Positions 6,501-19,970 of a stretch of 64,000 nt of DNA are shown here, piece by piece (the first letter of the stretch is position 1; each line of letters opens with the position of its first letter). Both the position numbers and the translations under genes were made by a program. The notes beneath the pieces were generated by a model. That model made no database searches, was not told where the DNA came from, and saw only the letters and a list, made by a program, of their open reading frames with translations. The stretch is from the sequence record ON286972.1. The stretch is one strand, 5' to 3'.

Positions 6501-6594
6501 GTTTTAAAAAGTACTTGCATACTAAGTTTAAAAGCGTATAATACTTTCTATCAGGTGGGGAATAGTTCCCCACTATAATTAAGAGATTAATTTT

Positions 6595-6828
6595 ATGAGT
6601 ACTATCTTAACTGTTTCTCAATCCGTTGCACTGGCTGAATTGATGGAAGCTCTGAGCCGTTGCACTGAGGTTGGCTTGTTTGATGTGGTTGACGTTGCAC
6701 CGGACGTTATTAATCATTTTTGTGATGCAATGGAAGAGTGCAAGGAAGATGATAGCCGTATGATGGCGGCCACCTTTGAGGAAGTACAGCCAGGTGAGAT
6801 CAAAGGTTTACCAGTACTGAAAAAATAG
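6595..6828 (+). CDS. early hypothetical protein (acidic)
   Basis: Own promoter/hairpin cassette. Confidence 0.8.
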   Translation: MSTILTVSQSVALAELMEALSRCTEVGLFDVVDVAPDVINHFCDAMEECKEDDSRMMAATFEEVQPGEIKGLPVLKK

Positions 6829-6914
6829 TACTTGCAAACTAAGTTTAAAAGCGTATAATACTTTACATCGAGGCGGGGGAATGGTTCCCCGCTCAATCAA
6901 ACGAGGATTTAAAA

Positions 6915-7154
6915 ATGGCTAAATCAAAAATGTTCTTAGGTCACAAAAACAAAACTCAATGGAATGTAAGCCTTTGGATTAATAACGATGAATCATTATA
7001 CCGGTTGGCCCAGGACTTTATTGCCGCTAACACTAATCGCAATGATGCGGCCCGTCATATGATGCTATTTTTAGAACAGACTGGACAAGATAAAACGCCG
7101 GACGGATTCAAGTACAGTACTACGGCGATCCGTGCGGCGATGGTTGGAATGTAA
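6915..7154 (+). CDS. early conserved phage protein (WNVSLWINND...TPDG motif)
   Basis: Motif recognised from a widespread phage hypothetical family; SD GAGG. Confidence 0.85.
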   Translation: MAKSKMFLGHKNKTQWNVSLWINNDESLYRLAQDFIAANTNRNDAARHMMLFLEQTGQDKTPDGFKYSTTAIRAAMVGM

Positions 7155-7236
7155 TAGAATAGATTTAAAGTACTATTGCACGGTGATAGTACTTTATAAT
7201 AGGATTTTATTCATACATCAACGATGGGGTAACAGC

Positions 7237-7500
7237 ATGAATATTATATACTTTGCAACGCGTGAACAAGCTCGGATCGCCGCTCGCCAGGACGGGGCAA
7301 CGTTTAAAGATATGGGCGTGCAATCGGAACGTGGTAAACGTTGGGCGGTAGTAAAGCAAAGTACAGCCAGATCCTTACAGTACTGGTTAGCGGCGTTAAA
7401 AAGTCCTGCTAGTGTATCGCGTCGAGTGGTAGAAATAAAGCACGACCGCAAGGGCAACCGTGTTACTGTGTACAGTACTAAAAAGATAGCAGTACTATAA
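7237..7500 (+). CDS. early hypothetical protein, paralog of 19204
   Basis: FATRE.AR...KDMG...RWAV and HDRKGNRVTVYS shared. Confidence 0.8.
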   Translation: MNIIYFATREQARIAARQDGATFKDMGVQSERGKRWAVVKQSTARSLQYWLAALKSPASVSRRVVEIKHDRKGNRVTVYSTKKIAVL

Positions 7501-7589
7501 AAAAAGTACTTGCAAAGTAATTAGATTAATGTATAATACTTTCTATCAGGTGGGGAATACTTCCCCACTACAATGAAGAGGATTTTAAA

Positions 7590-7820
7590 ATGGCTATTAT
7601 GTATATGACCGAAGTTAAAACCGTAAAAGATACTACCACTAATAAAACTACTTACTTACAGCGGGTATGCGGTGTATGGCAACGTATTAGTAAAGCAAAG
7701 TACTATAAATTAACTTCATATGCTAATCGTTCGGATTCATTCAGTACTGAAATAAAAGGTAATAAATTACACCAATACGGCACTTATTATTATTATAGCC
7801 TGGACGCGATTGCAGTCTAA
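7590..7820 (+). CDS. early hypothetical protein
   Basis: Own cassette, SD GAGG. Confidence 0.8.
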   Translation: MAIMYMTEVKTVKDTTTNKTTYLQRVCGVWQRISKAKYYKLTSYANRSDSFSTEIKGNKLHQYGTYYYYSLDAIAV

Positions 7821-7850
7821 GCAGTTTACAAATCTTTACAATTGCCAGTA

Positions 7851-7927
7851 TTGACTTATTTTGTCAGTACTGGCATAATGTATCTATTGAAACGAACAAT
7901 TTGGCCCACGGGGTGCGGGAGTGTATC
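7851..7927 (+). ncRNA. promoter + two-hairpin GGGUGC unit
   Basis: TTGACT-17-CATAAT; AUUG/CAAU hairpin; GGCCCACGGGGUGCGGGAGUGUAUC. Confidence 0.55.
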
Positions 7928-7961
7928 TATAGAAAAAGTAGTTTAGTACAGTTACAATTGT

Positions 7962-8023
7962 GCACCCTATGGGTTAGCTGTTGTCATGGGGTATATTATA
8001 CCAGTACTGGATAGTGCTGTCAA
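7962..8023 (-). ncRNA. promoter + GGGUGC unit, antisense and convergent with 7851
   Basis: TTGACA-17-TATAAT on minus strand; CUAACCCAUAGGGUGC. Confidence 0.55.
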
Positions 8024-8103
8024 TACCTTTTTTTTACTATTCAGTACTGAAAACTATTTTTAAAAAGTACTTGCAAACTATGTTTAAAGGCGTATAATGT
8101 TTT

Positions 8104-8180
8104 ACATCAGGACGGGGAACGAAATAAGTAACTCCCCATTAAGTAGCCCAGGAGTAAGGCACACGAAAAACTCCCCTGAT
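8104..8180 (+). ncRNA. pseudoknotted small RNA, copy 1
   Basis: Between two tandem promoters; GCC/GGC stem, loop GGAG pairs with CUCC; AUCAGG/CCUGAU closing stem. Confidence 0.65.
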
Positions 8181-8248
8181 AAAATAGTTTGAAAATTGTT
8201 TTTAAAAGCGTATAATACTTACATCAACTACTGAATGAGGGTTACAAA

Positions 8249-8860
8249 ATGAAAACTATCACTACTACTACTTTCGTTATGGATTTTTCTGAATTGAACG
8301 CAGAACAAAAAACGTCAGCTATCGAACTGGTTCGGGAACGTGAAAAAAACTCAAACGACAATTATTTTTCTGAAAGTGAAATTGAATACTATAAAGAAAC
8401 AGTACTACCGGAATATGGCATTAATGACGCTGAAATACAATTCAGTGGTTTTTGGTCCCAGGGTGACGGTGCATCAATCAGTACTGACCACGTTGACGCA
8501 GTGAAGTTTTTACGCAAGGTAAGAGCATTAACTAAGTATCGCTCAATCCGTCACCTGCTGAATGAAGATGATTTGGCGATGAGTGTAAAGCGTTCGCACT
8601 CCCACTACTCGCATGAGAATACTGTAAGCGGGTACATTGAATCGGCTTACACTGATTTAACCGCAAAACAAGAAACGTTAGTTAATGAGCTTGAGGAACT
8701 ACTCACTGAAACTATTCGTGAATTATCCCGCAAGTTGTACCGTGATTTAGAGAATGCATATGAGGATCAATTCACTACTGAAAACATTACGGCACTGATT
8801 GAGGGTAACGAATATCAATTCAATGTTATTGATGGCGTAGTAGAATCAATCGAATATTAA
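8249..8860 (+). CDS. early conserved phage protein (FSGFWSQGDG motif), acidic
   Basis: Motif of a widespread phage family; function not assigned. Confidence 0.9.
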   Translation: MKTITTTTFVMDFSELNAEQKTSAIELVREREKNSNDNYFSESEIEYYKETVLPEYGINDAEIQFSGFWSQGDGASISTDHVDAVKFLRKVRALTKYRSIRHLLNEDDLAMSVKRSHSHYSHENTVSGYIESAYTDLTAKQETLVNELEELLTETIRELSRKLYRDLENAYEDQFTTENITALIEGNEYQFNVIDGVVESIEY

Positions 8861-8950
8861 TTTAAAAAGTACTTGCATTGTAGTTAGATTAACGTATAAT
8901 ACTTTACATCGAGGCGGGGAATGGTTCCCGCCTTTACTGAGGGTTATCTA

Positions 8951-9232
8951 ATGAGCAAAGTAATTAACTATACAGTGTTAAGCAAGTCATTGTCTATTAG
9001 CCAATGTACTGATGGTTATTGGCTTTATGATGAAACGCGTGGCATGAATTTAGCTATGCAGGAGAAAACTACTGATGCGGCATATCTTAAAGCACTGGAA
9101 TACTACCAGAAGCGTTTAAAGGAAGTAGAAAACGATTATAATAACCTGAAAGCGAAAGTAGATAATTTCGTTGGTCAATTCGTTGACGATGACGAGGGGC
9201 ACTACTGCGACCGTTGCGGATCTTACAGTTAA
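8951..9232 (+). CDS. early conserved phage protein (DGYWLYDETRGMNL)
   Basis: SD GAGGG; start adjusted from 8921. Confidence 0.85.
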   Translation: MSKVINYTVLSKSLSISQCTDGYWLYDETRGMNLAMQEKTTDAAYLKALEYYQKRLKEVENDYNNLKAKVDNFVGQFVDDDEGHYCDRCGSYS

Positions 9233-9249
9233 GTACTGAGGATTATCTA

Positions 9250-9453
9250 ATGAGTGATTTAATTGAACGTATCAAAGAGCTTGAAGAAAAAGAATTGCAG
9301 TTAATCGGCTTACAGAATAAAATCTATCATGATTTGGGGAGTTTTATCAATGCTTGGGATAGTGGCGATCCTGATGCGTTACCTGCTAACCGCCAGGCGA
9401 TGATCAATGATGTGCGTAGTGTCTTTGAGTATGTTTTAAAGCAATTAAATTAA
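9250..9453 (+). CDS. early hypothetical protein
   Basis: SD GAGG; start adjusted. Confidence 0.8.
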   Translation: MSDLIERIKELEEKELQLIGLQNKIYHDLGSFINAWDSGDPDALPANRQAMINDVRSVFEYVLKQLN

Positions 9454-9541
9454 AAAAAGTACTTGCAATTAGTTTTTAGTACTGTATAATGGTTTACATA
9501 GAGGGGGGGAAATGGTTCTCCCTGGTAATGAGGAAAATACA

Positions 9542-9763
9542 ATGGCTAATATCACTACTCTTTCCCAACTGGAAGCACTGGTTAAATCTATGCGGGAACA
9601 TGCCGACAATATCGGCGTAAAAGATCCAGCCGTTTGCTTCTGCGACGAATTGAATGATGATACCCTGGTAATAGCAGAAGTCCAGGACGTTTCTAACTAT
9701 TCCTCGCGTTACACTGGCGGTGTAGCAAATAAAGGTGACTTCTGTTTATACCTTACAAAATAA
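9542..9763 (+). CDS. early hypothetical protein
   Basis: SD GAGG after leader hairpin. Confidence 0.8.
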   Translation: MANITTLSQLEALVKSMREHADNIGVKDPAVCFCDELNDDTLVIAEVQDVSNYSSRYTGGVANKGDFCLYLTK

Positions 9764-9765
9764 CA

Positions 9766-9798
9766 ACGCGGGGAGATAATAACTCCCCGTTACTTTTT
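9766..9798 (+). terminator. intrinsic terminator
   Basis: GGGGAG/CTCCCC hairpin then T-run. Confidence 0.65.
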
Positions 9799-9817
9799 CA
9801 GTACTGAATCATTTAAT

Positions 9818-9898
9818 AGACGGATCTCGGCACCCGGTGGGTTAGTGACTGTTTCGTCTTGATGTAGTAATTATGCCAGTACTGGATGCACTTGTCAA
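9818..9898 (-). ncRNA. promoter + two-hairpin GGGUGC unit, antisense
   Basis: TTGACA-17-CATAAT on minus strand; GAC-GAAACA-GUC; CUAACCCACCGGGUGC. Confidence 0.55.
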
Positions 9899-10006
9899 CA
9901 ATTATTTTTCAAATACTTTTTATTAAAATACTTGCAATTAGTTTTTAAACGCGTATAATGTTTTGCATAGGGGGAGCGGTTCCCCTGGTAACTAAGGAAT
10001 AAGAAA

Positions 10007-10243
10007 ATGGTCGAACAAATCAAATCAACGTCTTCGAATGTAACGGGAACGGTAGCACACTTTACTAGTGATGAATCGCGGGGCGTTCCCTATTGTGCTG
10101 TACATGTAAACACTGAGGGTAACTACTGGTTTACGGTTTACGGATCATATTCATTTGGACGGCCAGGGCATCAAAAAATTCTGGATAAAGTACAGCCAAC
10201 GGGTAAAAATATCACTGCTGAAATGTTTTATAAAAAATCATAA
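10007..10243 (+). CDS. early hypothetical protein
   Basis: Own cassette, SD AAGGA. Confidence 0.8.
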   Translation: MVEQIKSTSSNVTGTVAHFTSDESRGVPYCAVHVNTEGNYWFTVYGSYSFGRPGHQKILDKVQPTGKNITAEMFYKKS

Positions 10244-10328
10244 AGTACTTGATAATAGTTTTTAGTACTGTATAATATTTTACATCGCAAGGGGGGAGCG
10301 GTTCCCCCTGGTAACTAAGGATAATCAA

Positions 10329-10628
10329 ATGAAAATTGCAATCATCGCCCTGGCTTTATCTGTTTCCTCTTTCGCTGTTAATGCGTCGTTAGATGTAAGT
10401 AGTGAAAAATTCATTCAGTGCACCGTAGCAATGACAGATGAAAGTACTGGCGAGATTGTTTTAAAGGATTTAGAGATCCAGCCAGAAGCATTTAAAAACG
10501 GGCCGTTCCATGAAGAAGACGAAAAAGGTAGCACGACAATTTATTACGATGCAAGTACTAAACGCGGTTCGGTCACTGTTATGGATACTGAGAAAGTAAC
10601 TCATACTGGCGTTATTAATTGCCGTTGA
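10329..10628 (+). CDS. early exported/periplasmic protein
   Basis: Sec signal peptide MKIAIIALALSVSSFAVNA; two Cys. Confidence 0.8.
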   Translation: MKIAIIALALSVSSFAVNASLDVSSEKFIQCTVAMTDESTGEIVLKDLEIQPEAFKNGPFHEEDEKGSTTIYYDASTKRGSVTVMDTEKVTHTGVINCR

Positions 10629-10649
10629 TAGATACTACGGGGTAACATC

Positions 10650-10880
10650 ATGACTAAGCGAATTGTTTTACTTAACGAAAGCAGTACTACACAACTACTT
10701 AACGCCGTGCATTATGATATTGAAACGAGCGTTAATCTTATCAGTACTGTAGTACTGTTGGACACTGGAAAGGTCGCCAATGATAAAGCGATTGCAGGTA
10801 TACTAACGGATCTTGAGCCTGGTAGCAGTGCACCAATAACGTTAAATGGTAAAGTGTTTAACATTTTACTTACTGATTAA
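10650..10880 (+). CDS. early hypothetical protein
   Basis: SD GGGG; followed by terminator. Confidence 0.75.
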   Translation: MTKRIVLLNESSTTQLLNAVHYDIETSVNLISTVVLLDTGKVANDKAIAGILTDLEPGSSAPITLNGKVFNILLTD

Positions 10881-10886
10881 GTACAT

Positions 10887-10909
10887 AGCCCACCTGGTGG
10901 GCTTTTTTG
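10887..10909 (+). terminator. intrinsic terminator
   Basis: AGCCCAC-ctg-GTGGGCT + TTTTT. Confidence 0.8.
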
Positions 10910-10995
10910 TTTTTGTAGTATCGTAGTACTGAGATACTTTGAAAATAGTTTTAAAAAAGTAGTTGACATTACCGCAGAAAAGCGTAGAATGTATT

Positions 10996-11069
10996 ACATC
11001 AAGACGGGGAGCACTAAGTAGACCGCCAGTAAGTCGAACGAAAAACTGGACACGTCGAGAAAACTTTGA
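10996..11069 (+). ncRNA. pseudoknotted RNA, copy 3 (leader of the H-NS-like gene)
   Basis: GAC/GUC stem, loop CCAG pairs with CUGG (compensatory versus copies 1 and 2). Confidence 0.6.
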
Positions 11070-11113
11070 TACACTAATAAACGTAAACTAAACTTTAATT
11101 GAGGATTTATAAA

Positions 11114-11596
11114 ATGGCTAATGTAAAATCATTCATCAAAGCACTGGTAGCAAATGAAACTAACGTAGCGGCAGAGATCCTGGCTGAACTGGATAACGAT
11201 ACCATGAAAGCGGTACGCAATAATTTTAACATCGCTTACAGTACTGCGAAAGAACTACAAGCAAATAAAGCGGCGGCACTTGAAGCTGAGAAGGCAGCAC
11301 GCGAAGCAGAATTGCAGAAAACGATTGAAGATATTAACGCCGCCGTCGCTGGGCTTGATCTGGAAGTAGTTACCGAAATGGCACGTAAAGCCCTGGCAGC
11401 GAAATACGGGGAAGACAAGCCAGAAGTAAAAGCTAAAAAATGGATTCAAGAACGTGTGACGGTTGTACTGGATAATGGCGAGGAATACACTGTACCAGTA
11501 CGCGGTAACTGCATTGCCGTAGTACTGGATGCTATCAAAGAAAGCGGTTTGACCCGTGAGGAATGGATCGAAGCTCATCGCAAAGTTGAAGCATAA
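11114..11596 (+). CDS. H-NS-like nucleoid protein
   Basis: Coiled-coil AAALEAEKAAREAELQ...AGLDLE and C-terminal DNGEEYT...GNCIAVVLDAIKESGLTREEWI align by eye to H-NS [33 protein letters not shown]. Confidence 0.6.
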   Translation: MANVKSFIKALVANETNVAAEILAELDNDTMKAVRNNFNIAYSTAKELQANKAAALEAEKAAREAELQKTIEDINAAVAGLDLEVVTEMARKALAAKYGEDKPEVKAKKWIQERVTVVLDNGEEYTVPVRGNCIAVVLDAIKESGLTREEWIEAHRKVEA

Positions 11597-11617
11597 CAAT
11601 TAAAGTACTGAATCACT

Positions 11618-11645
11618 AGCCCACCTTAAACAGTGGGCTTTTTTG
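11618..11645 (+). terminator. intrinsic terminator
   Basis: AGCCCAC...GTGGGCT + T-run. Confidence 0.8.
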
Positions 11646-11871
11646 TGTCTATAGTATTCCAGTCCACTAGCACCGCCTAGAATCGATTCTAACGCATTAA
11701 ACTGATTATCTGATGTATCGCCCTAGCTGGTGGCGTTAAGGTCGTTAGAACGCGATTGAGGGCGATTAAAGTATTTTATAAAAACTAATAAAAAGTACTT
11801 GCACGATTAAGAGATTAGCGTATAATTAATTACATCAAGGCGAGACACCTTAACTAACTGAGGATATAAAG

Positions 11872-12024
11872 ATGAATACTTATGAACTGGATTGTTTCAC
11901 TTTACAAGTAATGTCAGTATGCAGCAAGAAAGATTGGTCATCAAAGGAATTTAAAGCAGTTATCGCGTGTGCAAAACACGGCAAGACTATCAATGAAACG
12001 GCATCAATCATTGATAAACTTTAA
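11872..12024 (+). CDS. early small protein (50 aa)
   Basis: Own promoter, SD GAGG; translated by hand. Confidence 0.7.
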   Translation: MNTYELDCFTLQVMSVCSKKDWSSKEFKAVIACAKHGKTINETASIIDKL

Positions 12025-12094
12025 AAAATAGTTTGACAATAGTTTTAAGTACTGACATAATACATACATCAACTACTGAATAGGAATCAAAACA

Positions 12095-12322
12095 ATGGCT
12101 ATCGTAATCACTCGCGTAACTGGTACTACTGGCACTGCTTCAACTGTTGCTGTAATTACTAATAAGAAAGGTGCGGAATTACATTTTGCAATGAATACCT
12201 GGGCGGTGAATGAGTTCGGTCAGTGGGCAAGTGTAGAATACATTGAAACCTATCAAGTGCCATCGATTAGCTTAACTGATTTAGGTGTAGAACGTATCCT
12301 TTGCCTGGATGAATTAAATTAA
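12095..12322 (+). CDS. early hypothetical protein
   Basis: Own promoter, SD AGGA. Confidence 0.8.
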   Translation: MAIVITRVTGTTGTASTVAVITNKKGAELHFAMNTWAVNEFGQWASVEYIETYQVPSISLTDLGVERILCLDELN

Positions 12323-12408
12323 AAAAGTACTTGCAAAGTAAATCGGATAAAGTATAATACATTACATCAAGGGGAGAAATGATTCTCCCCACTAAGAGGA
12401 AACTAAAA

Positions 12409-12552
12409 ATGAAAACTTGTCAATGTGGTAAAAAATCTATTACTGGTTTAAAGCGGGGCGTTGCTCTTTGCCAGTATCATTATAATGCTCAAGTATGGGG
12501 TAAAGAGTGGGCCGACCAGGTTGAAGCATCAAAGAAAGCAAAAAGTAAGTAA
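12409..12552 (+). CDS. early small Zn-finger-like protein (47 aa)
   Basis: MKTCQCGKK...LCQYH; SD GAGG. Confidence 0.7.
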   Translation: MKTCQCGKKSITGLKRGVALCQYHYNAQVWGKEWADQVEASKKAKSK

Positions 12553-12633
12553 AAATATTATCACAGTACTATTGACATAGTTTGATAGTACTGGCATAAT
12601 AGATTTTATCAAGACAACTAAGAGGAAACAAAA

Positions 12634-12846
12634 ATGGCTATCATTACTAAAATCAAAGTAAACAAAACACTGGTTAAGCTGGAACAAGTGAAAGCAGGTT
12701 ATAAAGTATCTTGGTGCGGTATGTATCGGACGTTCGCAGAGGTTGACGATGCAATCAAGTACTACACTGATACGGTTGCTAACTTTGTTCGTGCTGATGT
12801 AGTAATGGCAGTGGCAACACATAAAGCAGCGAAAGAAAGTAAGTAA
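12634..12846 (+). CDS. early hypothetical protein, paralog of 16221
   Basis: Own promoter, SD GAGG. Confidence 0.8.
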   Translation: MAIITKIKVNKTLVKLEQVKAGYKVSWCGMYRTFAEVDDAIKYYTDTVANFVRADVVMAVATHKAAKESK

Positions 12847-12937
12847 AATTATTATCACAGTACTATTGACATAGATTGATAGTACTGGCATAATAGATTT
12901 TATCAAAACAACACATATTAATTTAAGGAATACTAAA

Positions 12938-13282
12938 ATGGCTAACATCAACACTATCGCATCACAAAATATCAACCTGTCTTCTGTTGAAGTTGTACAT
13001 ATTGCCGCTCGGCGTTGGTTCCAGGCTTCATATGGTAACACTTATTTCTCTTTAAGTGTAGACGTTGAAATTGATGGTAATTTTATTGAAGTAGTAAACG
13101 TGCCGTTCCAATATGGATACGGGGATCACTTTGACACTGTAGCAATGGAAGAATTTAGCAAGGTTATTAATATGGAAGGTAAAGAGTTTTTACGCGGTTC
13201 TTATCTTTCCCGTTTTTGCCGTGACAATAATATCACTGTTTACAGTTCGGTAACTGATGTTAAACGCAAAAAAGATCTTTAA
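12938..13282 (+). CDS. early conserved phage protein (RW...GNTY...YGYG), paralog of 18785
   Basis: Shared motifs and DVKRKKD C-terminus. Confidence 0.85.
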   Translation: MANINTIASQNINLSSVEVVHIAARRWFQASYGNTYFSLSVDVEIDGNFIEVVNVPFQYGYGDHFDTVAMEEFSKVINMEGKEFLRGSYLSRFCRDNNITVYSSVTDVKRKKDL

Positions 13283-13362
13283 TTAGCTTTACTTTATGCA
13301 GATACTTTGATATAGTGTCTGCATAGGGGAAAGAAATTAAATTAACTTAAGAGGATAGTATA

Positions 13363-13632
13363 ATGAAAAATATCAGTACTTTAATCGATGCAGGTACGCA
13401 TGTTCGTCGGTCTATGGTTGCAACCAGCACTACAAAACAAGTAGCAAGCGGTTATCTTGTATTTGTACACGATGGAAAACTCCTGGAACGTTCAATCAAT
13501 TTTGATGTTAAGAACAATTGTCGTTTTATTATCTTTAAGCGTGAGCAATATAAAATTGATTTACCAGCGAAGCCCATTAGCGGGGCGTACAACGTGCAAT
13601 CATTGTTTGAGCGTCAACCATACACCTATTAA
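13363..13632 (+). CDS. early hypothetical protein
   Basis: SD GAGG. Confidence 0.75.
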   Translation: MKNISTLIDAGTHVRRSMVATSTTKQVASGYLVFVHDGKLLERSINFDVKNNCRFIIFKREQYKIDLPAKPISGAYNVQSLFERQPYTY

Positions 13633-13683
13633 TCAAAACAACGTTAGCGGTTGATTTGGGCCGCTAATTTTGAGGATAATACT

Positions 13684-13854
13684 ATGAATGTTAATCAAGT
13701 ACTAAATGAAGTTGAAAGCATCATTAAACCAATGAAACGTATTGATGCTATTCCTACGCCGGAAGAATGCAGACTATACGAACAATACAGCGTAGAACAA
13801 GCCCAGGCGATGGCCCGTATCCGTCCGGTTGCTAGTACTGATAAGGCGGCGTAA
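13684..13854 (+). CDS. early hypothetical protein
   Basis: SD GAGG; start adjusted. Confidence 0.7.
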   Translation: MNVNQVLNEVESIIKPMKRIDAIPTPEECRLYEQYSVEQAQAMARIRPVASTDKAA

Positions 13855-13897
13855 TATTCTTACTGTACAGGATAAGATCGACATCTTAAAGGTTAAT

Positions 13898-14065
13898 ATG
13901 TATGTGATTGATGCCGTACCTGGTAAAGTATTTGCATACGATGATTCTAATCGCAGTCCTTTCTATTGTAGTCATGTAGTTGGATACGTGCCGTTAGCGT
14001 ATGTTATTGAAAGAGTGGTTGATGCAGCATACAATCATTTTTTAGAAAATAATACTTGCAATTAG
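13898..14065 (+). CDS. early hypothetical protein
   Basis: SD AAGG; start adjusted from 13829. Confidence 0.6.
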   Translation: MYVIDAVPGKVFAYDDSNRSPFYCSHVVGYVPLAYVIERVVDAAYNHFLENNTCN

Positions 14066-14137
14066 TTTTTAGTACTGTATAATGTTTTACATCGAGGGGG
14101 GGGGAAATGGTTCTCCCCACTAATTAAGGAATATGAA

Positions 14138-14284
14138 ATGAAAGCATCAAAAAAGAGTAATACTAAGAAAGCATGTTCACCTTTCGCTGGGGTATTCCCT
14201 TTACGTTTCGTTGATGAAGTGGTTTCCTACCCGCCGGGCCTTACTCCTGAGATGGTAGAAAGTTTGCGTAAATCTAAAAAATAG
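14138..14284 (+). CDS. early small protein (48 aa)
   Basis: Own cassette, SD AAGGA; translated by hand. Confidence 0.65.
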   Translation: MKASKKSNTKKACSPFAGVFPLRFVDEVVSYPPGLTPEMVESLRKSKK

Positions 14285-14369
14285 TACTTGCAATTAGTTT
14301 TTAGTACTGTATAATGTTTTACATCGAGTGCGGGAACTATTCCCGCCTAACTCAAAGAGAGAAAATATA

Positions 14370-14612
14370 ATGGAAACCATTTTAATCAAAGACACTGCTA
14401 CTACTGTAACTTATGATAATGATTGTATTATCCCTGGCACTGATTACGGCGAACGTGTACCCGTTCAAGTCGAGATTGATACTACATACATTGACCAGGC
14501 TGAAAAGTGTATCACTATTGTTATTGGTGAATATCGTTTTCTACCAGAAGAGATCCAAAAATGGCAGTATATGATTGACCGTGCGAAATTAGTCGCACAA
14601 AGTTTAAAATAA
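14370..14612 (+). CDS. early hypothetical protein
   Basis: Own cassette; start adjusted. Confidence 0.8.
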   Translation: METILIKDTATTVTYDNDCIIPGTDYGERVPVQVEIDTTYIDQAEKCITIVIGEYRFLPEEIQKWQYMIDRAKLVAQSLK

Positions 14613-14693
14613 TACTTGCAATTAGTTTTCAGTACTGTATAATGTTTTACATAGAGGGGGGAAATGGTTCTCCCCGATACTAGGAGAATCAAA

Positions 14694-14846
14694 ATGAAAC
14701 AATATAATGCTCGGTTTGATGTTACTATCGGCAACGGCAAAGGTCAATTTTCTTTCAGTACTCGCCGCAGTTATACAGAAAACTTCCTGCGTAATTGTGC
14801 ATTGACCGCCGCACAAATTAAACATTACTTCCAGGCTAAAAAATGA
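14694..14846 (+). CDS. early small protein
   Basis: SD AGGAG; start adjusted. Confidence 0.7.
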   Translation: MKQYNARFDVTIGNGKGQFSFSTRRSYTENFLRNCALTAAQIKHYFQAKK

Positions 14847-14932
14847 AATCATTGGCTTATTACAGTTCGGCGGTGATCGGTGCATTGATCGCGGCATTGT
14901 TAGTAACCTATCTATTCTTTATGGTGATTTAA

Positions 14933-15070
14933 ATGAATCCTAACGGTTTAATTTACAGTACTCCTAAAACGAAAGCAGATAAAGCGAAAGCACGTAAAGC
15001 GAAAGTAAAGGAGTACATCAAGCAAGGCATGACGCGAAAAGCAGCAGTACTAAAAGCTAAAAATAAATGA
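14933..15070 (+). CDS. early small basic protein (45 aa)
   Basis: SD GGTG; Lys/Ala-rich; translated by hand. Confidence 0.65.
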   Translation: MNPNGLIYSTPKTKADKAKARKAKVKEYIKQGMTRKAAVLKAKNK

Positions 15071-15075
15071 AAAAA

Positions 15076-15155
15076 GTGGTTGACTTCGGTCAGCCATTTT
15101 GCTATTATATATTCATTGAGAGATAGCTCACTAGCCCACAGGGTGCGGAAGTGTA
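15076..15155 (+). ncRNA. hairpin-embedded promoter + two-hairpin GGGUGC unit
   Basis: GTGGTTGAC-TTCG-GTCAGCCAT; TATTAT; GAG/CUC hairpin; CUAGCCCACAGGGUGC. Confidence 0.55.
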
Positions 15156-15189
15156 AATAAAATATATCAATCTAATAAGGAGTACTACA

Positions 15190-15372
15190 ATGTTTAAACC
15201 AATCGAACTAGCGGCATCACATATCATCGGTAAACCTGCCGTTATCATACGCCAGGAAGACGTAAACCTATGGATCATCTATCTAGACATGAAAGAGATT
15301 GAGCGTCACGATGATTTCAAATCAGCGTCAATTGCGTATGATATGGCGTTATGTGAGTATCAAAGAGATTAA
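15190..15372 (+). CDS. early hypothetical protein
   Basis: SD AAGGAG. Confidence 0.8.
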   Translation: MFKPIELAASHIIGKPAVIIRQEDVNLWIIYLDMKEIERHDDFKSASIAYDMALCEYQRD

Positions 15373-15472
15373 AAGTATTTTGCAAAAAGTACTTGCATTG
15401 TACTTAGAATCAAGTATAATGTTTTACATAGCAAGGGGAAACGGTTTCCCCTGGTAACTAAGGAAACATATC

Positions 15473-15814
15473 ATGACTATTGCAATTGCTCAATCTAACT
15501 TTGAAAACGAATTCATCGCTCAGGCACTGCGTTTAAATGATGGTCGGGCCGAAATCAATTACGGTTTCAATTCAGGCGGTTGTGAAAACTATCAGTACTT
15601 TATAACTGCTGATGGCGGTGTCCTGGGTATCAATACAGTTATTGTAAACATTCAGAAAATTAATTTCAATGATCCAGACGATAGCCAGTTTTACATTGTA
15701 GGCGTTGACGTGAACTATGAGGATGACTCACTAACTGATGATTGCACTGGAGAGAAGTTAGAAAGTGCATACGGTGAAGATGATTATCAGTCCGGTCCAG
15801 AAGATTTCGAATAA
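15473..15814 (+). CDS. early conserved acidic phage protein (YFITADGG...ESAYGE)
   Basis: Own cassette; motif of a widespread phage family. Confidence 0.85.
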   Translation: MTIAIAQSNFENEFIAQALRLNDGRAEINYGFNSGGCENYQYFITADGGVLGINTVIVNIQKINFNDPDDSQFYIVGVDVNYEDDSLTDDCTGEKLESAYGEDDYQSGPEDFE

Positions 15815-15916
15815 TATTAAAAAATAGTTTGACAATAGATTATAGTACTGTATAATAGTTTACATCAAGGCACGGGAAGTACCAGTACTTCCCTACTAAC
15901 AAAGAGAGAAAACAAA

Positions 15917-16129
15917 ATGGCTAATATCCGCACTGTACTGAAAAATGCAAAACAAGTTTTATTTTCTGATCATGAAAATTTCAACAAGGATATCACAGGC
16001 GTTCGGAATATCAAAGATGTAAAAAATGTTATGGGTATCTATTGCAATATGAAACGTGTTGGTACTTTCGGCGACAAGGTACTATACCAGGCAGGGGATT
16101 ACAATTTTACACTGACTATCATTAACTAA
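15917..16129 (+). CDS. early hypothetical protein
   Basis: Own cassette. Confidence 0.8.
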   Translation: MANIRTVLKNAKQVLFSDHENFNKDITGVRNIKDVKNVMGIYCNMKRVGTFGDKVLYQAGDYNFTLTIIN

Positions 16130-16220
16130 AAATATTATCACAGTACTATTGACAAAGATTGATAGTACTGACATAATAACTTTTATCAAGACAACGCATA
16201 TTAACTTAAGGAATACTAAA

Positions 16221-16400
16221 ATGGCTATTATCGCAAAAACTGAAATCATCGGTCTGGATTCTATCATCATGACGTTTGAAGAACAAAAAGGTATGTATGT
16301 AGTTTCCTATGGTGATTATGTTCGGGAGTATGAAACGGTAGACGAAGCCTTTGAAAGTTACATTCGCCAGGTGAATAAAGCATACGACGACTACCGCTAA
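16221..16400 (+). CDS. early hypothetical protein, paralog of 12634
   Basis: SD AAGGA; start adjusted. Confidence 0.8.
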   Translation: MAIIAKTEIIGLDSIIMTFEEQKGMYVVSYGDYVREYETVDEAFESYIRQVNKAYDDYR

Positions 16401-16499
16401 AATATATTACCAGTACTATTAAAGATATTGACAACGTTTGATAGTACTGTATAATAAGTTTTATAAACAGTAGTTAACTTAACCTAAGAGAGAAACAAA

Positions 16500-16643
16500 A
16501 TGATCGCACTGGATTCATTCATCGACGCAGTACTGGCAAAAACTGGCGAAGATCTGACCGCAGAACAATACGCAATGATCGAACAATGCCAGCAAGACGG
16601 TAAATCGGTGAAAGATACTGTTAAGATTATCCGCAAGATGTAA
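16500..16643 (+). CDS. early small protein (47 aa)
   Basis: Own promoter; followed by terminator. Confidence 0.7.
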   Translation: MIALDSFIDAVLAKTGEDLTAEQYAMIEQCQQDGKSVKDTVKIIRKM

Positions 16644-16649
16644 GATTAT

Positions 16650-16679
16650 AGCCCACTGGTTAACGCTGGTGGGCTTTTT
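16650..16679 (+). terminator. intrinsic terminator
   Basis: AGCCCAC...GTGGGCT + TTTT. Confidence 0.75.
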
Positions 16680-16840
16680 AGTATATACCTATCCGATAGT
16701 ACTACAAAATAGATTAGCTCGTTAGAATGCGATTGAGAGCGTTTAAATAAGTACTAAAAAGTATTGACAGTACTGAAAGATAGTGTATAATGTTTTATAT
16801 CAAGGGGAGGATAACCCTTCCCAGTACTGAGGAAAACAAA

Positions 16841-17029
16841 ATGGAACAATTATCAAGTATTTTAGTACAAGATGAATACGGCAATCCAGGAAGTGCTATC
16901 ATTGTTCGGGGTAATAAGGCAACATTTGTTATTGCTGGTGGACCTGTACAGCGTAGCATTAAAAACAATGCCGTTACTATTAATAATGTACGCTATCGTT
17001 TAGATAAAGAATTAATTCATAAACTTTAA
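16841..17029 (+). CDS. early hypothetical protein
   Basis: SD GAGG; start adjusted. Confidence 0.8.
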   Translation: MEQLSSILVQDEYGNPGSAIIVRGNKATFVIAGGPVQRSIKNNAVTINNVRYRLDKELIHKL

Positions 17030-17115
17030 AAAAGTACTGGACAATAGATTATAGTACTGTATAATAGTTTACATGAAGGGGAGAAATGATTCTCCCCAGT
17101 ACTGAGGAAAGAAAA

Positions 17116-17328
17116 ATGCAAGGTCAACTAATCGTTCGTAAATGGTCTGATACTAACGAAAAACCGTGGGATGTACAATACATCGCCCCCAATGGTGAAT
17201 CCAGATATCAACCTGGCGTAACGCATAGTACTGAGCAATTCGCCGCTGCTCACCGTGAACGCCTGTTACAATCCATGCAGCAAGGCTTCGGTGAAAAATT
17301 CATCCAAGATCATTGGCTGAAAGATTAA
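17116..17328 (+). CDS. early hypothetical protein
   Basis: SD GAGG; start adjusted. Confidence 0.8.
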   Translation: MQGQLIVRKWSDTNEKPWDVQYIAPNGESRYQPGVTHSTEQFAAAHRERLLQSMQQGFGEKFIQDHWLKD

Positions 17329-17415
17329 AAAAGTATTTGACAAAGTATCACAGTACTGTATAATTAATTACATCAAGGGGAGAAGTTTTCTCCCCACCAT
17401 ATAAGGGTAACAGTT

Positions 17416-17505
17416 ATGCACATGAATCCGTTCATAGTAGTAATTGCAATCATTATGGCAGTACAGGCCGTATTAGTTTACTTAAGCAAAGCAGGAGTTA
17501 TCTAA
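17416..17505 (+). CDS. early single-TM peptide (29 aa)
   Basis: MHMNPFIVVIAIIMAVQAVLVYLSKAGVI after own cassette. Confidence 0.55.
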   Translation: MHMNPFIVVIAIIMAVQAVLVYLSKAGVI

Positions 17506-17506
17506 A

Positions 17507-17680
17507 ATGATCCATGTAGAATTGTCAGTACTGAAAGATCTGTTTTATCGGATGGGTACTACTGGCGAATATCCGAAGGGTGATACCGCAAAACTTTTTG
17601 TATCACTCGACTTATGGCAACGCGAACAATTAGTAACGTCCTGGCGTAAAGGTAAAGCCGACAAGGGGGTCGTAGCATGA
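17507..17680 (+). CDS. early small protein (57 aa)
   Basis: SD AGGAG; translated by hand. Confidence 0.65.
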   Translation: MIHVELSVLKDLFYRMGTTGEYPKGDTAKLFVSLDLWQREQLVTSWRKGKADKGVVA

Positions 17681-17826
17681 AAGAATACATTTTCGAAGTT
17701 ACGTTTTTGGGTAAAGGTATGCATCAACTGATACGGTCCAGCGGATACAGTGTTAACCAGGCGTGGAATAACTTAAAACAAATGTACCCGAACGCTATCA
17801 CATATCGCAACCCTCGCGAGGCATAA
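17677..17826 (+). CDS. early small protein (49 aa)
   Basis: ATGA overlap with upstream stop. Confidence 0.65.
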   Translation: MKEYIFEVTFLGKGMHQLIRSSGYSVNQAWNNLKQMYPNAITYRNPREA

Positions 17827-17840
17827 AATAAATTGAAAAA

Positions 17841-17918
17841 AGGGATTGACTCCGGTCAGTCCCTTTGCTATTATATACGCATAGACAAAAACTAGCCCAC
17901 CGGGTGCATAAATGTATC
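17841..17918 (+). ncRNA. hairpin-embedded promoter + GGGUGC unit
   Basis: GGGATTGAC-TCCG-GTCAGTCCC; CUAGCCCACCGGGUGC; no ORF before next promoter. Confidence 0.55.
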
Positions 17919-18007
17919 TATTGTTTGCTGGTGGCCTGTATTGTCTAGTACTGAAAACTATTTTAAAAAAGTACTTGCATTGTACTTAGAATCAAGTATA
18001 ATGTTTT

Positions 18008-18082
18008 ACATCAGGACGGGGAATGAAACAAGTAACCCCGTTAAGTAGTCCAGGAGTAAGACATACGAAAACCTCCCCTGAT
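18008..18082 (+). ncRNA. pseudoknotted small RNA, copy 2
   Basis: Between tandem promoters; ACGGGG/CCCCGU, GUC/GAC, GGAG/CUCC, AUCAGG/CCUGAU. Confidence 0.65.
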
Positions 18083-18150
18083 AAAATAGTTTGACAATAG
18101 AAAGTAAACGAGTATAATACTTACATCAACCACTGATAAGGAAACATAAA

Positions 18151-18426
18151 ATGCGGATTCTACTGACAGCTAACGAAATCGAACAAGTACTGACTACTAA
18201 CCTGCAAGACTGGAAACGTGAAGCAGATATCCAGGCGGTTCAATGGCTTAACGATAAGTTAACGCCGGATGACTTAAGCAAGATTGTAGATCCTCAATTC
18301 TACGAAGATATTCACGACACCGCGTTAAGCGTCGAGGATGTACTTGATAAGCACTACATTGATACTGATTTACAGGTTTACGGTCGTAAAAACTTTATCA
18401 CTATTCACGACATTTACAATACTTAA
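18151..18426 (+). CDS. early hypothetical protein (acidic)
   Basis: SD AAGGA. Confidence 0.85.
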   Translation: MRILLTANEIEQVLTTNLQDWKREADIQAVQWLNDKLTPDDLSKIVDPQFYEDIHDTALSVEDVLDKHYIDTDLQVYGRKNFITIHDIYNT

Positions 18427-18513
18427 GTATTGACAAAGTATCTTAGTACTGTATAATAGTTTACATCAAGGCGGGGAAATGGTTCCCCTCCTAACTAAAA
18501 GAGAGAAATTAAA

Positions 18514-18696
18514 ATGGCTAAGTGCACTATCTGTAAGAAAGAAATCGTATTAGTTCCAAGTGCCCGTGAACGTGCCGCTCGGTTCGGTGGCAAAGCGTCA
18601 GACTATACAAAAATGTTTACTGCCCATGCAGATTGCCAGGTAGCAAAACGTTCACAAGAAAGCGTAGAATTAATGCGTAAACTTTCCAAAAAATAA
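18514..18696 (+). CDS. early Zn-finger-like protein
   Basis: CTIC...H..C; own cassette. Confidence 0.8.
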   Translation: MAKCTICKKEIVLVPSARERAARFGGKASDYTKMFTAHADCQVAKRSQESVELMRKLSKK

Positions 18697-18784
18697 GTAT
18701 TGACAAAGTATCTTAGTACTGTATAATAGTTTACATCGAGTGAGGGGAAACGGTTCCCCTCCTAACAAAGAGAGAGAAATAAAA

Positions 18785-19108
18785 ATGGCTATGATCCTTA
18801 CCCAGAAAGTAGAACTGAAAATTGTAACCTCCTTTGACATTAAAGTTAATCGGTGGACTGATTCACACGGCAATACTTACCACTCTTGCTACGTGTCTGC
18901 TTTGATTGGTGATCGCTGGGAGGATTTAGGACATGAAACCTTTACTTACGGTTACGGCACACAAGGCGAATACACGGGCTTGGAGATCATTAAAGAAACG
19001 GTTATAGGTTTCAACCCGAAAGAAAAAGTTATTCATCAAATAGAAAAAGAGATCAACAAAGAAATAACAGTTCGCTACAACGATGTAAAACGTAAGAAAG
19101 ATATGTAA
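18785..19108 (+). CDS. early conserved phage protein, paralog of 12938
   Basis: RWTDSHGNTY...TYGYG...DVKRKKD. Confidence 0.85.
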   Translation: MAMILTQKVELKIVTSFDIKVNRWTDSHGNTYHSCYVSALIGDRWEDLGHETFTYGYGTQGEYTGLEIIKETVIGFNPKEKVIHQIEKEINKEITVRYNDVKRKKDM

Positions 19109-19203
19109 TAGAATCCATTTAAAGTACTATTTGACATTGCCCAGATAGTACTTTATAATAGACTCTCGCTTGTAGTACTAACTTAACTAATAGGATGTAT
19201 ACC

Positions 19204-19599
19204 ATGATTACTAAATTCTACGCTACCCGTGAAGCTGCCCGTATTGTTGCACGCGAGGAAGGAGCAGCATTTAAAGACATGGGCACGACCGCACCGAAAG
19301 GTCAACGCTGGGCCGTACAGTTCAAAGAAATCTCTGATATTGTGAATTCACCTGAGCCAGTACTGACAGCAGCAGAACAGAAGAAAGCTGATGAACTGTC
19401 AGCAGTACTTAACGCTCAAGATGAATTTATCGCTGGTTCTGATATTAAAGTACAGGTAAATTCGAATGCATGGACTCACGCGGATCACCTGGCTAACCTG
19501 AAGCGTCCAAGTGAACTGATTCGCAACAAACGAGAGATCCGTCATGACCGCAAGGGAAACCGTGTTACCGTATACAGTAAACGCCGCCAGGTTATCTAA
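19204..19599 (+). CDS. early hypothetical protein, paralog of 7237
   Basis: Shared N- and C-terminal motifs with an internal insertion. Confidence 0.85.
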   Translation: MITKFYATREAARIVAREEGAAFKDMGTTAPKGQRWAVQFKEISDIVNSPEPVLTAAEQKKADELSAVLNAQDEFIAGSDIKVQVNSNAWTHADHLANLKRPSELIRNKREIRHDRKGNRVTVYSKRRQVI

Positions 19600-19621
19600 T
19601 AACTTGCAGTACTAACAACAC

Positions 19622-19646
19622 GGCGGGATCAGTTCCCGCCTTTTTT
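19622..19646 (+). terminator. intrinsic terminator
   Basis: GGCGGGA-tcagt-TCCCGCC + TTTTT. Confidence 0.75.
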
Positions 19647-19661
19647 ATAGGATAAACTAAA

Positions 19662-19916
19662 ATGATTAAGGTACAACTATCTAAAGATAATATCTTGCGG
19701 GTACACTATAAAGCCCCACAGAGAATCATCACAAAGGCCGTACAGCTTGCTAATGAGTTTATTAATGGTAATCTATTACCGAGGAAGTTAAGCAACGGAA
19801 AACTGCGTGTAATCGACGTGGACACCAACAACAGAATAGTAATCGAGAATACCGGAAAGATAAACCTATATGAACACCAACAATATAATAAGAAAATAAA
19901 ACTAATATCACGTTGA
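19662..19916 (+). CDS. ParE/RelE-like small toxin-fold protein (tentative)
   Basis: P..I..KAV.....F.....P.KL..G....V....R.....G.......H..YN pattern as recalled for enterobacterial ParE-like proteins. Confidence 0.5.
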   Translation: MIKVQLSKDNILRVHYKAPQRIITKAVQLANEFINGNLLPRKLSNGKLRVIDVDTNNRIVIENTGKINLYEHQQYNKKIKLISR

Positions 19917-19970
19917 CAGTACTCAAATGTTTTAGTACTATGTATCTATACCAACACGGGGAGTAACAAA

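Follow-up and report, generated by a model that had tools for sequence, protein, structure and literature searches.

Three copies of a pseudoknotted element in phage A4

We analysed a window of 64,000 nt from sequence record ON286972.1, which is Escherichia phage A4, an Asteriusvirus jumbo phage. The window carries three copies of an element of roughly 75 nt, each placed directly behind a consensus sigma-70 promoter. Each copy is comprised of the word UAAGUAG, a 3-bp stem (S1), a loop that pairs with a strand following ACGAAAA, and a closing helix (P1) that uses the first transcribed bases. The coordinates of the copies and of the neighbouring promoters and genes are given in Table 1. The core pattern TAAGTAG-N-AGTAAG-N-ACGAAAA matched at 8140, 11015 and 18042 on the + strand, with 0 matches in 100 shuffles, and a search of the whole A4 genome revealed only these three copies. 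With the covariance model built for the family (R1), copies 1, 2 and 3 score 46.7, 52.8 and 49.2 bits, respectively.

Table 1. Features of the three element copies and their surroundings in phage A4
Position	Strand	Feature	Details
8071..8098	+	Upstream sigma-70 promoter of copy 1	-35 TTGCAA 8071-8076; -10 TATAAT 8093-8098; preceded by an A/T-rich UP-like tract; start inferred at A8104 or A8106
8104..8180	+	RNA copy 1 (predicted fold)	P1 AUCAGG 8106-8111 with CCUGAU 8175-8180; P2 hairpin GGGGA 8114-8118 with UCCCC 8133-8137; UAAGUAG 8140-8146; S1 GCC 8146-8148 with GGC 8158-8160; pseudoknot helix GGAG 8151-8154 with CUCC 8171-8174; ACGAAAA 8163-8169
8189..8216	+	Second promoter, directly after copy 1	TTGAAA, 16-bp spacer, TATAAT; 11/12; drives gene 8249-8860 (A4_268; PHROG of unknown function)
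10963..10990	+	Promoter of copy 2	TTGACA, 16-bp spacer, TAGAAT; preceded by an intrinsic terminator at 10887-10903
10996..11070	+	RNA copy 2 (predicted fold)	No P2 hairpin; outer P1 AUCAAG 10998-11003 with CUUUGAU 11064-11070; inner P1 GACG 11003-11006 with CGUC 11053-11056; UAAGUAG 11015-11021; S1 GAC 11021-11023 with GUC 11033-11035; pseudoknot helix CCAG 11026-11029 with CUGG 11046-11049; ACGAAAA 11038-11044
11114..11596	+	Gene led by copy 2	A4_275, 160 aa; followed by a terminator at 11618-11639
17975..18002	+	Upstream promoter of copy 3	-35 TTGCAT 17975-17980; -10 TATAAT 17997-18002
18008..18082	+	RNA copy 3 (predicted fold)	P1 AUCAGG 18010-18015 with CCUGAU 18077-18082; P2 CGGGG 18017-18021 with CCCCG 18036-18040; UAAGUAG 18042-18048; S1 GUC 18048-18050 with GAC 18060-18062; pseudoknot helix GGAG 18053-18056 with CUCC 18073-18076; ACGAAAA 18065-18071
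18091..18118	+	Second promoter, directly after copy 3	TTGACA, 16-bp spacer, TATAAT; 12/12; drives gene 18151-18426

The sequence of copy 2 is 100% identical in 18 related phage records, and the promoter-gene unit that follows copy 3 also follows the element in phage muut. No conserved ORF was found in the element; the only frame that crosses it starts inside the -10 box, and in copies 2 and 3 this frame stops at UAAGUAG. An earlier note on this sequence had described the three copies, their compensatory base changes and their promoters, and its observation is confirmed by our analysis. However, its description of the gene behind copy 2 as H-NS-like was not confirmed, since no H-NS likeness was detected for the product in PHROGs, NCBIfam or a PDB sequence search.

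Covariation of the three helices

The stem, loop-to-3' and closing-helix pairings were read as the earlier note had given them, the closing helix of copy 2 being AUCAA(G)/(C)UUUGAU plus the inner GACG/CGUC. To further verify whether these pairings are maintained, which had been set beforehand as a condition for the proposal, we analysed 27 distinct homologous cores from many phages. The results showed that all three helices covary: 97.4% of the cells pair, against 78.8% when shuffled, and the covariation score is 0.405 against 0.085, a value reached by 0 of 500 shuffles. Sliding the 3' partners by one to three columns dropped the pairing to 18-35%. RNAalifold found the loop-3' helix on its own, and the minimum free energy fold of copy 1 gave P1, P2 and the loop-3' helix (z = -2.2). 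The leader of phage T7 folds far better than shuffles (z = -3.75).

Distribution of the element

The element is not specific to jumbo phages. The same core lies at nt 551-587 of phage T7, 54 nt after the start annotated for E. coli promoter A1 and just before A2, and it was found in at least 488 T7-like records and in 55 plus 34 IMG/VR loci. It also occurs in Rak2-like jumbo phages, in Stephanstirmvirinae and Vequintavirinae-labelled phages, in muut, A7_1, LTH01 and LIMEzero, and in a variant form in T7-likes of Klebsiella, Erwinia, Dickeya, Pantoea and Vibrio. All recorded hosts are gamma-proteobacteria, namely Enterobacterales, Vibrio, Aeromonas and one record listed on Actinobacillus. Between unrelated virulent phages the cassette moves at about 90% identity. 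In related phages the region is annotated as direct terminal repeat, and in phages with annotated repeats the doubling gives 4 places.

Diverged copies sit in the leftward early leaders of the Rac and e14 prophages of E. coli K-12, next to the repressor gene, between racR and ydaG in Rac and between ymfK and ymfJ in e14. Their homology to the T7-like leaders gives z = 8-10 against shuffles. The temperate phages carry one copy only, and no N-like protein follows it in Rac-type phages. BLAST found no copy in 5,426 E. coli genomes or in PLSDB plasmids. Among phages that use the host polymerase early, T5, T4, SP6, gh-1 and rV5 lack the element.

In 52 of 57 distinct loci another sigma-70 promoter follows the element at once, and its -35 often overlaps the 3' strands of the RNA. 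No terminator follows the element. In most lineages the 5' end is paired from +2 or +3. The early genes in the window are all co-oriented, and nearly every small gene of A4 has its own strong promoter; only 3 of dozens of A4 early promoters carry the element.

Comparison with known RNA families

No match to the element was found in Rfam 15, either at the gathering score or, on nine homologous loci, at E up to 10, and full-text literature searches found no description of it. ARAGORN detected no tRNA-like or tmRNA-like element in 7500-18500.

Like the HK022 putL/putR antiterminator RNAs, the element is a structured RNA of about 70 nt encoded shortly after early promoters read by the host RNA polymerase, neither can depend on a phage protein, and the prophage members lie in the leftward early leader, where putL lies. 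Put also has tertiary features, a triple helix and a bulge in stem I (PMC9378689). However, the element is not homologous to put: model R1 found nothing in HK022 beyond a 7-bit chance hit elsewhere in the genome, and no AAGUAG...CGAA word pair occurs on either strand of the nun-cI-cro region. Put is described as two stem-loops, while this element has a closing helix plus a loop-to-3' pseudoknot, and put occurs on both early operons.

The element shares its place in the early leader with lambda nut and the rrn boxA leader sites, but has no boxA or boxB itself, and no boxA word (GCUCUUUAACAA) lies within or near the A4 copies. An rrn-type boxA is present in the same leader in T7-likes, and in LIMEzero-type phages it lies only 12-25 nt after the element; thus boxA is an associate in that lineage only.

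The preQ1-I riboswitch aptamer is likewise a small H-type pseudoknot, in the order stem, short loop, second-helix strand, A-rich 3' strand and second-helix partner, but its Rfam model did not match. In the element the stem has only 3 bp, the crossing strand has 10 nt with an invariant ACGAAA, and there are an extra closing helix and the invariant UAAGUAG. Its pseudoknot 3' strand varies (CUCC, CUGG, CAGG, CUGAC, GGUUGA) and is followed in 52 of 57 loci by a promoter, not by a ribosome site or terminator. The glutamine riboswitch (glnA RNA) and other loop-E-bearing small RNAs are about 60 nt with a closing helix and a pseudoknot, and a possible AGUA/GAA loop-E module may be shared with them, but there is no Rfam match. 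ToxI and the phage pseudo-ToxI are also short pseudoknotted RNAs, with a precedent for phage mimicry. However, no sequence or model likeness to ToxI was found, Tandem Repeats Finder showed no array of the element in 7500-18500, where the copies are 2.9 and 7 kb apart, and there is no toxin partner nearby.

Interpretation of the element

The interpretation given in the earlier note is partly supported. That the element is an RNA-level, pseudoknotted, promoter-proximal structure with compensatory changes, outside the named Rfam families, is supported. Early expression is a fair inference, because the promoters are of sigma-70 type with UP-like tracts, because the region is annotated as terminal repeat in related phages, and because the T7 homologue lies behind promoter A1. 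On the contrary, its twister-like topology and ToxI likeness have no support, and a separate small RNA of about 75 nt is not shown; there is no terminator after the element, and transcripts would run on into the next unit. The decoy, ribozyme and sensor roles it proposed remain hypothetical, and the wider distribution, in the T7 A1 leader and in prophage leftward early leaders, raises a fourth role that it did not list, action in cis on the transcribing host polymerase.

We consider the three elements to be copies of a widespread phage leader RNA, which the host sigma-70 RNA polymerase would transcribe first, from strong early promoters on the DNA that enters the cell first. P1 joins the first transcribed bases, or in T7 a hairpin loop, to the strand directly following the pseudoknot, and S1 (G-N-C with G-N-C) carries the loop that pairs with the strand after ACGAAA. 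The two invariant unpaired words, AAGUAG and ACGAAA, fit the AGUA/GAA loop-E (bulged-G) signature and may build a fixed docking surface, although the loop-E pairing conflicts with the first pair of the covarying stem S1 and is unproven. What the analysis establishes is the covariation of the fold, the distribution of the family and its fixed place behind early promoters; transcription in A4, the loop-E module, binding to polymerase and any effect on elongation are inferred, as is every function considered below.

Our preferred but tentative explanation is that the nascent RNA docks on the polymerase that has just made it and stays with it, and that this polymerase then resists pausing and termination through the co-oriented early region, whereas polymerases starting at the promoter just downstream stay unmodified. 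This is the logic of put, a precedent for an RNA that acts alone on the E. coli elongation complex (PMC9378689). The fixed position behind the earliest host-type promoter in unrelated phages, the location of the temperate relatives where lambdoid phages keep nutL or putL, the boxA in T7-like leaders, the co-orientation of the early genes in the window and the place of the copies in the terminal repeat of relatives favour this view. No phage protein can be the partner, as the family crosses phage families that share no early proteins, and all recorded hosts are gamma-proteobacteria. Without a following terminator, the RNA would stay tethered to the polymerase, and the invariant unpaired bases plus three covarying helices point to a specific tertiary fold. 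However, with so many promoters in A4 read-through is not obviously needed, and since a second promoter follows in most loci many polymerases would never be modified; boxA, by contrast, lies after all three T7 promoters. The single copy in temperate phages, when put and nut occur on both early operons, the lack of a copy in HK022, the many phages without the element and its presence at only 3 of dozens of A4 early promoters also speak against it, and in T7 RNase III cuts the leader off at R0.3.

A free decoy or aptamer RNA is possible and nearly as likely. In this case the unit of promoter plus about 75 nt of RNA would be a gene in its own right, and the RNA, cut out of the longer transcript in the A/U-rich spacer in A4 or by RNase III at R0.3 in T7, would accumulate within seconds of infection and bind a conserved host protein or small molecule, aiding host takeover or counter-defence before any phage protein exists. 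This would agree with the modular layout of A4, where each promoter drives one small product, with the number of copies, with both RNA ends being locked in P1 as in stable RNAs, with the movement of the cassette in the manner of accessory genes, and with the negative BLAST results in E. coli genomes and plasmids. On the other hand, there is no terminator or defined 3' end, no partner is known, placement before rather than after the extra promoters lowers the dose, and a prophage leftward early leader is an odd place for a decoy.

Two further explanations are unlikely to a similar degree. The first is a riboswitch-like sensor, in which the closed P1 plus pseudoknot would bind a metabolite or host factor and change the expression of what follows. 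The size, the P1, the pseudoknot with its A-rich strand and the invariant unpaired bases resemble small aptamers such as preQ1-I, copy 2 is a 5' UTR, and in Rac-type leaders the long-range 3' strand (CCCGGCGUU) abuts the Shine-Dalgarno sequence of the first gene, which a C-rich 5' stretch could mask. However, most members have no expression platform, the downstream gene does not depend on the element where a new promoter follows, the Shine-Dalgarno sequence in copy 2 lies about 30 nt beyond the fold, and no riboswitch model matches. The second is a passive structural leader, a very stable 5' fold that would protect the 5' end from RppH and RNase E, keep the untranslated leader free of Rho or R-loops, or help clearance of very strong promoters. 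The paired 5' end, the stability of the T7 leader and the constant location in an untranslated leader fit this, but seven plus six invariant unpaired bases and a conserved pseudoknot are more than a passive hairpin needs, and the downstream mRNA, which usually starts at its own promoter or is cut off by RNase III in T7, would not be protected.

A self-cleaving ribozyme is very unlikely, since despite the small size, the pseudoknot and the invariant core bases, and although some ribozymes contain loop-E-like modules, no twister, twister-sister, pistol, hatchet, hammerhead, hairpin or HDV model matched even at E up to 10, and classical in vitro work on T7 reportedly described intact A1-initiated transcripts and leader fragments made by RNase III, not by self-cleavage. 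A mimic of a type III antitoxin is the least likely, as beyond the general precedent the copies are dispersed single units and the family is far more widespread than any single toxin system would explain.

It is about as likely as not that the first product of infection by T7, by its relatives and by unrelated jumbo phages is a functional RNA and not a protein. This would be a portable pseudoknot of 60-110 nt that reprograms a conserved host machine within seconds of DNA entry. The target could be the transcribing RNA polymerase, giving pioneer polymerases that ignore pauses and terminators and may help pull the genome in, or a host factor that the RNA titrates. Either way, it would be a new class of factor-independent, host-directed phage RNA, shared by virulent and temperate phages and present in E. 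coli K-12 prophages.

Copies of the element in the genome of phage A4

The first 22 kb of Escherichia phage A4 (ON286972.1), an Asteriusvirus jumbo phage of 355.5 kb of which the window comprises bases 1-64000, hold about 60 small ORFs of unknown function, all on the + strand, and nearly every one of them is preceded by a near-consensus sigma-70 promoter. Many of the promoters in this dense array, about one per small ORF, are preceded by AGTACTTG and followed by an ACATCA start region, but only three are followed by the RNA element. In related phages this stretch is annotated as direct terminal repeat, and a paper on a Rak2-like relative reads such promoter clusters as the early region (PMC5259590).

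The observation made in the earlier note was confirmed, since each of the three copies it had described was found at its place and all of the pairings it had proposed are present. The core word pattern matched three times, with no match in 100 shuffles, and the whole genome holds only these three copies. Nested folding recovered the closing helix P1, the hairpin P2 and the loop-3' helix for copies 1 and 3. Copies 1 and 3 lie between two promoters, while copy 2 lies between a promoter and a gene (A4_275), and no ORF is conserved across the copies. The earlier note had called the gene after copy 2 H-NS-like; sequence comparison showed no H-NS likeness.

The loop of hairpin P2 repeats the two invariant core words in reverse order in copies 1 and 3, and the same holds in phages muut and A7_1. 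This could be an internal duplication or a second set of interacting strands, and it is unexplained. Elsewhere in the window there are three copies of a 12-bp hairpin whose 5' arm holds a -35 box (AAAGGGATTGACTCCGGTCAGTCCCTTT) and which is followed by a -10-like GCTATTATAT; it looks like a terminator-like stem fused to a promoter. The locations of these and the other features are given in the table below.

Locations of the features in the window and in homologous sequences
Feature	Sequence	Coordinates	Strand	Remark
Array of near-consensus sigma-70 promoters	Window	5000-22000	+	
Gene after copy 2 (A4_275)	Window	11114-11596		
Loop of hairpin P2, copy 1	Window	8119-8132		ACGAAAUAAGUAAC
Loop of hairpin P2, copy 3	Window	18022-18035		AUGAAACAAGUAAC
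12-bp hairpin with -35 box	Window	15073-15100	+	
12-bp hairpin with -35 box	Window	17839-17866	+	
12-bp hairpin with -35 box	Window	21148-21175	+	
E. coli promoter A1, annotated	Phage T7	nt 498		
Core of the element	Phage T7	nt 551-587		
E. coli promoter A2, annotated	Phage T7	nt 626		
Possible decayed duplicate, A2-A3 spacer	Phage T7 (locus L020)	nt 669-715 (L020 about 270-316)		
boxA word	Phage T7 (locus L020)	nt 812-823 (L020 413-424)		After A3 and before gene 0.3
boxA word	LIMEzero (locus L021)	L021 about 474-486		
Diverged member, Rac (locus L225)	E. coli K-12 NC_000913.3	1419515-1419553	-	
Diverged member, e14 (locus L224)	E. coli K-12 NC_000913.3	1202121-1202154	-	
Copy with 4-nt deletion	Phage CMSTMSU (locus L027)	L027 345-380		Record marked UNVERIFIED

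Distribution of the element in virulent phages

To see whether the element is confined to jumbo phages, we searched by BLAST and by pattern scans, and the results showed that it is not a jumbo-phage feature. The same core, AAGUAG-[G N C]-NN-(4-5 nt)-(A)UAA-[G N C]-NN-ACGAA(A/C)A-N-(partner), hereafter type A, was found in phage T7 between the annotated E. coli promoters A1 and A2, and in at least 488 T7-like GenBank records, whose recorded hosts include Escherichia, Klebsiella, Salmonella, Yersinia, Enterobacter, Citrobacter, Shigella, Serratia, Aeromonas, Hafnia, Providencia, Cedecea and Pantoea. It was also found in 55 IMG/VR loci, in Pantoea phage LIMEzero, in Rak2-like jumbo phages (K64-1, a Munch-like contig, Hallingskeid and a contig designated L040), in Stephanstirmvirinae (muut) and in Vequintavirinae-labelled phages (A7_1, LTH01). 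One copy, in phage CMSTMSU, has a 4-nt deletion in the pseudoknot loop (UAAGUAGUC-GAGUAAGAC), and it is either a decayed copy or an assembly error.

A second core type (type B) reads AAGUAG-[G N C]-A-UCAACC-G-[G N C]-NU-ACGAAAG-U-GGUUGA and lacks the UAA. It occurs in Vibrio phage ICP3, in Klebsiella, Dickeya, Erwinia and Pantoea T7-likes, and in 34 IMG/VR genomes. On the contrary, a search with our covariance model R1 found no copy in T5, T4, SP6, gh-1, rV5 or HK022.

The first pattern that we applied to IMG/VR was too narrow, and a relaxed pattern without the stem constraint gave, in a partial scan, only chance matches in coding DNA. A scan of genome contigs gave 4 hits, of which two are T7-like phage DNA inside bacterial assemblies and two are chance. 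Herbiconiux daphne scaffold150 (L082, 1,058 bp) and a MAG contig (L083, 2.7 kb) are bacterial assemblies that contain T7-like phage early-region DNA; this is most likely contamination and not a host copy of the element.

Relatives in temperate phages

BLAST against 5,426 E. coli genomes and PLSDB plasmids gave no match. When the covariance model R1 was run on the E. coli K-12 chromosome, however, two hits were obtained, which indicates that the BLAST blanks were a sensitivity limit. Both hits are diverged members in cryptic prophages and lie in the leader of the leftward early operon next to the repressor gene: one in Rac, between racR and ydaG (18.6 bits), and one in e14, between ymfK and ymfJ (20.1 bits), the latter copy being more decayed. 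In Rac a long-range helix (AACGCCGGG with CCCGGCGUU) ends right at the ribosome site of ydaG. The Rac-type leader occurs in 12 temperate phage records, with one copy per genome.

BLAST statistics at database scale for Rac against T7-like leaders found nothing, and we therefore used local alignment against shuffles instead. Alignment of the Rac, Evi and pPE4 leaders with T7-like leaders gave z = 8-10, with 0 of 300 shuffles as good, and includes a shared 14-nt block, AUACUUCGAGUUAC, upstream of the core. In these relatives the C of ACGAA varies (ACGAA, AUGAA or AAGAA).

Predicted secondary structure and covariation

To verify the predicted helices, we analyzed 27 distinct type-A cores. Stem S1 and the loop-3' helix pair in 97.4% of cells, and 4 of the 7 pairs show changes on both sides. 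The covariation score of 0.405, against 0.085, was reached by 0 of 500 shuffles, and slid controls fell to 18-35% paired. The partner sets seen for the loop-3' helix are GGAG/CUCC, CCAG/CUGG, CCUG/CAGG, CUUG/CAAG, GUCAG/CUGAC, UCAACC/GGUUGA and UCAACAA/UUGUUGA, and the S1 variants are GCC/GGC, GUC/GAC, GAC/GUC and GCU/AGC. G-U pairs place the RNA on the + strand.

The strand right after the pseudoknot pairs with an upstream strand to form the closing helix. An unconstrained search for this partner in 100 nt upstream had no statistical power per sequence, and haplotypes were counted instead. In 16 representatives there are 13 distinct complementary pairs; the 5' strand usually starts at +2 to +9 of the predicted transcript, and the 3' strand usually starts 0-1 nt after the pseudoknot. 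In T7-like type-A members the partner is instead the loop of the hairpin before UAAGUAG, and six complementary haplotypes occur: GUCAA/UUGAC, GUCAC/GUGAC, GUCGGU/ACCGAC, GUCAUC/GAUGAC, GAUUAG/CUAAUC and UCAAC/GUUGA. As read from the alignment, the stem of that hairpin covaries too, for example CCGGG/CCCGG and CCUGG/CCAGG.

The invariant words AAGUAG and (A)CGAAA are unpaired in this model. They fit the loop-E (bulged-G) signature 5'-AGUA-G with C-GAA-3', but this is our inference, which competes with the first S1 pair and is unproven.

Promoters and boxA words near the element

In 52 of 57 distinct loci a sigma-70 promoter-like site begins within about 0-46 nt after the pseudoknot, usually with a perfect TTGACA, whereas the background in phage early regions is 0.34 weaker sites per window of that size. 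In T7 the closing-helix strand is the -35 of A2, and in type B the pseudoknot 3' strand is the -35 of the next promoter. In the A2-A3 spacer of T7, CUUAAGCGCACCACGGCACAUAAGGUGAAACAAAACGG, followed by the same TTGACAACATGAAGTAA promoter, looks like a decayed duplicate of the A1-A2 element, although it lacks the pseudoknot complementarity.

An rrn-type boxA word (GCUCUUUAACAA) lies further on in the early leader of T7 and in other T7-likes, including loci L054, L179 and L182. In LIMEzero-type phages it follows the element by only 12-25 nt, but no such word lies near the A4 copies.

Comparison with known RNA families

A scan of the whole window at Rfam 15 gathering scores and E-value scans of the element and 12 homologous loci gave no match at the element, at curated or loose thresholds. 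The Methylobacterium-1 hit (E = 0.66) and the Trp_leader hits are chance, or are terminators upstream. No tRNA-like fold and no tandem array of the element were found, and HK022, the put phage, has no copy. Full-text literature searches found no description of the element, although an earlier mention of the conserved A1-A2 sequence in the older T7 literature cannot be excluded. As far as these searches reach, the family is undescribed, and in the membership tests that we ran it could not be placed in a known family. Its likely logic, a host-directed leader RNA or an RNA decoy, has precedents. One mapping of sequencing reads placed none of them on the sequence, so that it gave no evidence on the ends or the abundance of the RNA.

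Possible mechanism

The covariation of the helices, the distribution of the family and its position behind early promoters were shown by the analysis, whereas its transcription in A4, the loop-E module and any function, including an action on the polymerase, are inferred from sequence and position alone. The reading that we tentatively prefer is action in cis on the transcribing host polymerase. This best explains that the element is always the first structured RNA behind the earliest host-type promoter, that it sits at the nutL/putL position in prophages, and that it needs no phage protein. It also fits the lack of a terminator and the co-occurrence with boxA in T7-likes, and put shows that an RNA alone can do this (PMC9378689). 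However, the promoter that nearly always follows, the self-sufficient promoter array of A4 and the single copy in temperate phages weigh against it.

A free decoy or aptamer RNA is doubtful, but ranks not far behind. This best explains the modular promoter-RNA units of A4, the copy number, the locked ends, and the transfer as a cassette between unrelated virulent phages, but it does not explain the missing 3' end signal, or why the element lies before rather than after the extra promoters. A sensor and a passive stabiliser are each unlikely, and a ribozyme and a ToxI mimic are very unlikely. The interpretation offered in the earlier note was only partly supported: it had not recognised the RNA as a named family, which agrees with the Rfam searches, and of the roles it had proposed the decoy remains possible while the sensor, the ribozyme and the ToxI mimic rank lower.

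Significance of the element

T7 is among the best-studied viruses and its A1 promoter is a standard tool, yet the conserved, covarying pseudoknot in the A1-A2 spacer has no entry in Rfam. The element is of high interest because it sits in the first transcript of T7 and in prophages of E. coli K-12, and with the copies in Rac, e14 and T7 the question of its function is within reach of simple reporters in E. coli K-12. If it is functional, phages of very different kinds share a portable RNA device that acts on the host before any phage protein is made. That bears on how early transcription and genome entry are secured, on how phages take over or evade the host in the first seconds, and on whether there are more factor-independent RNA regulators of RNA polymerase beyond put.
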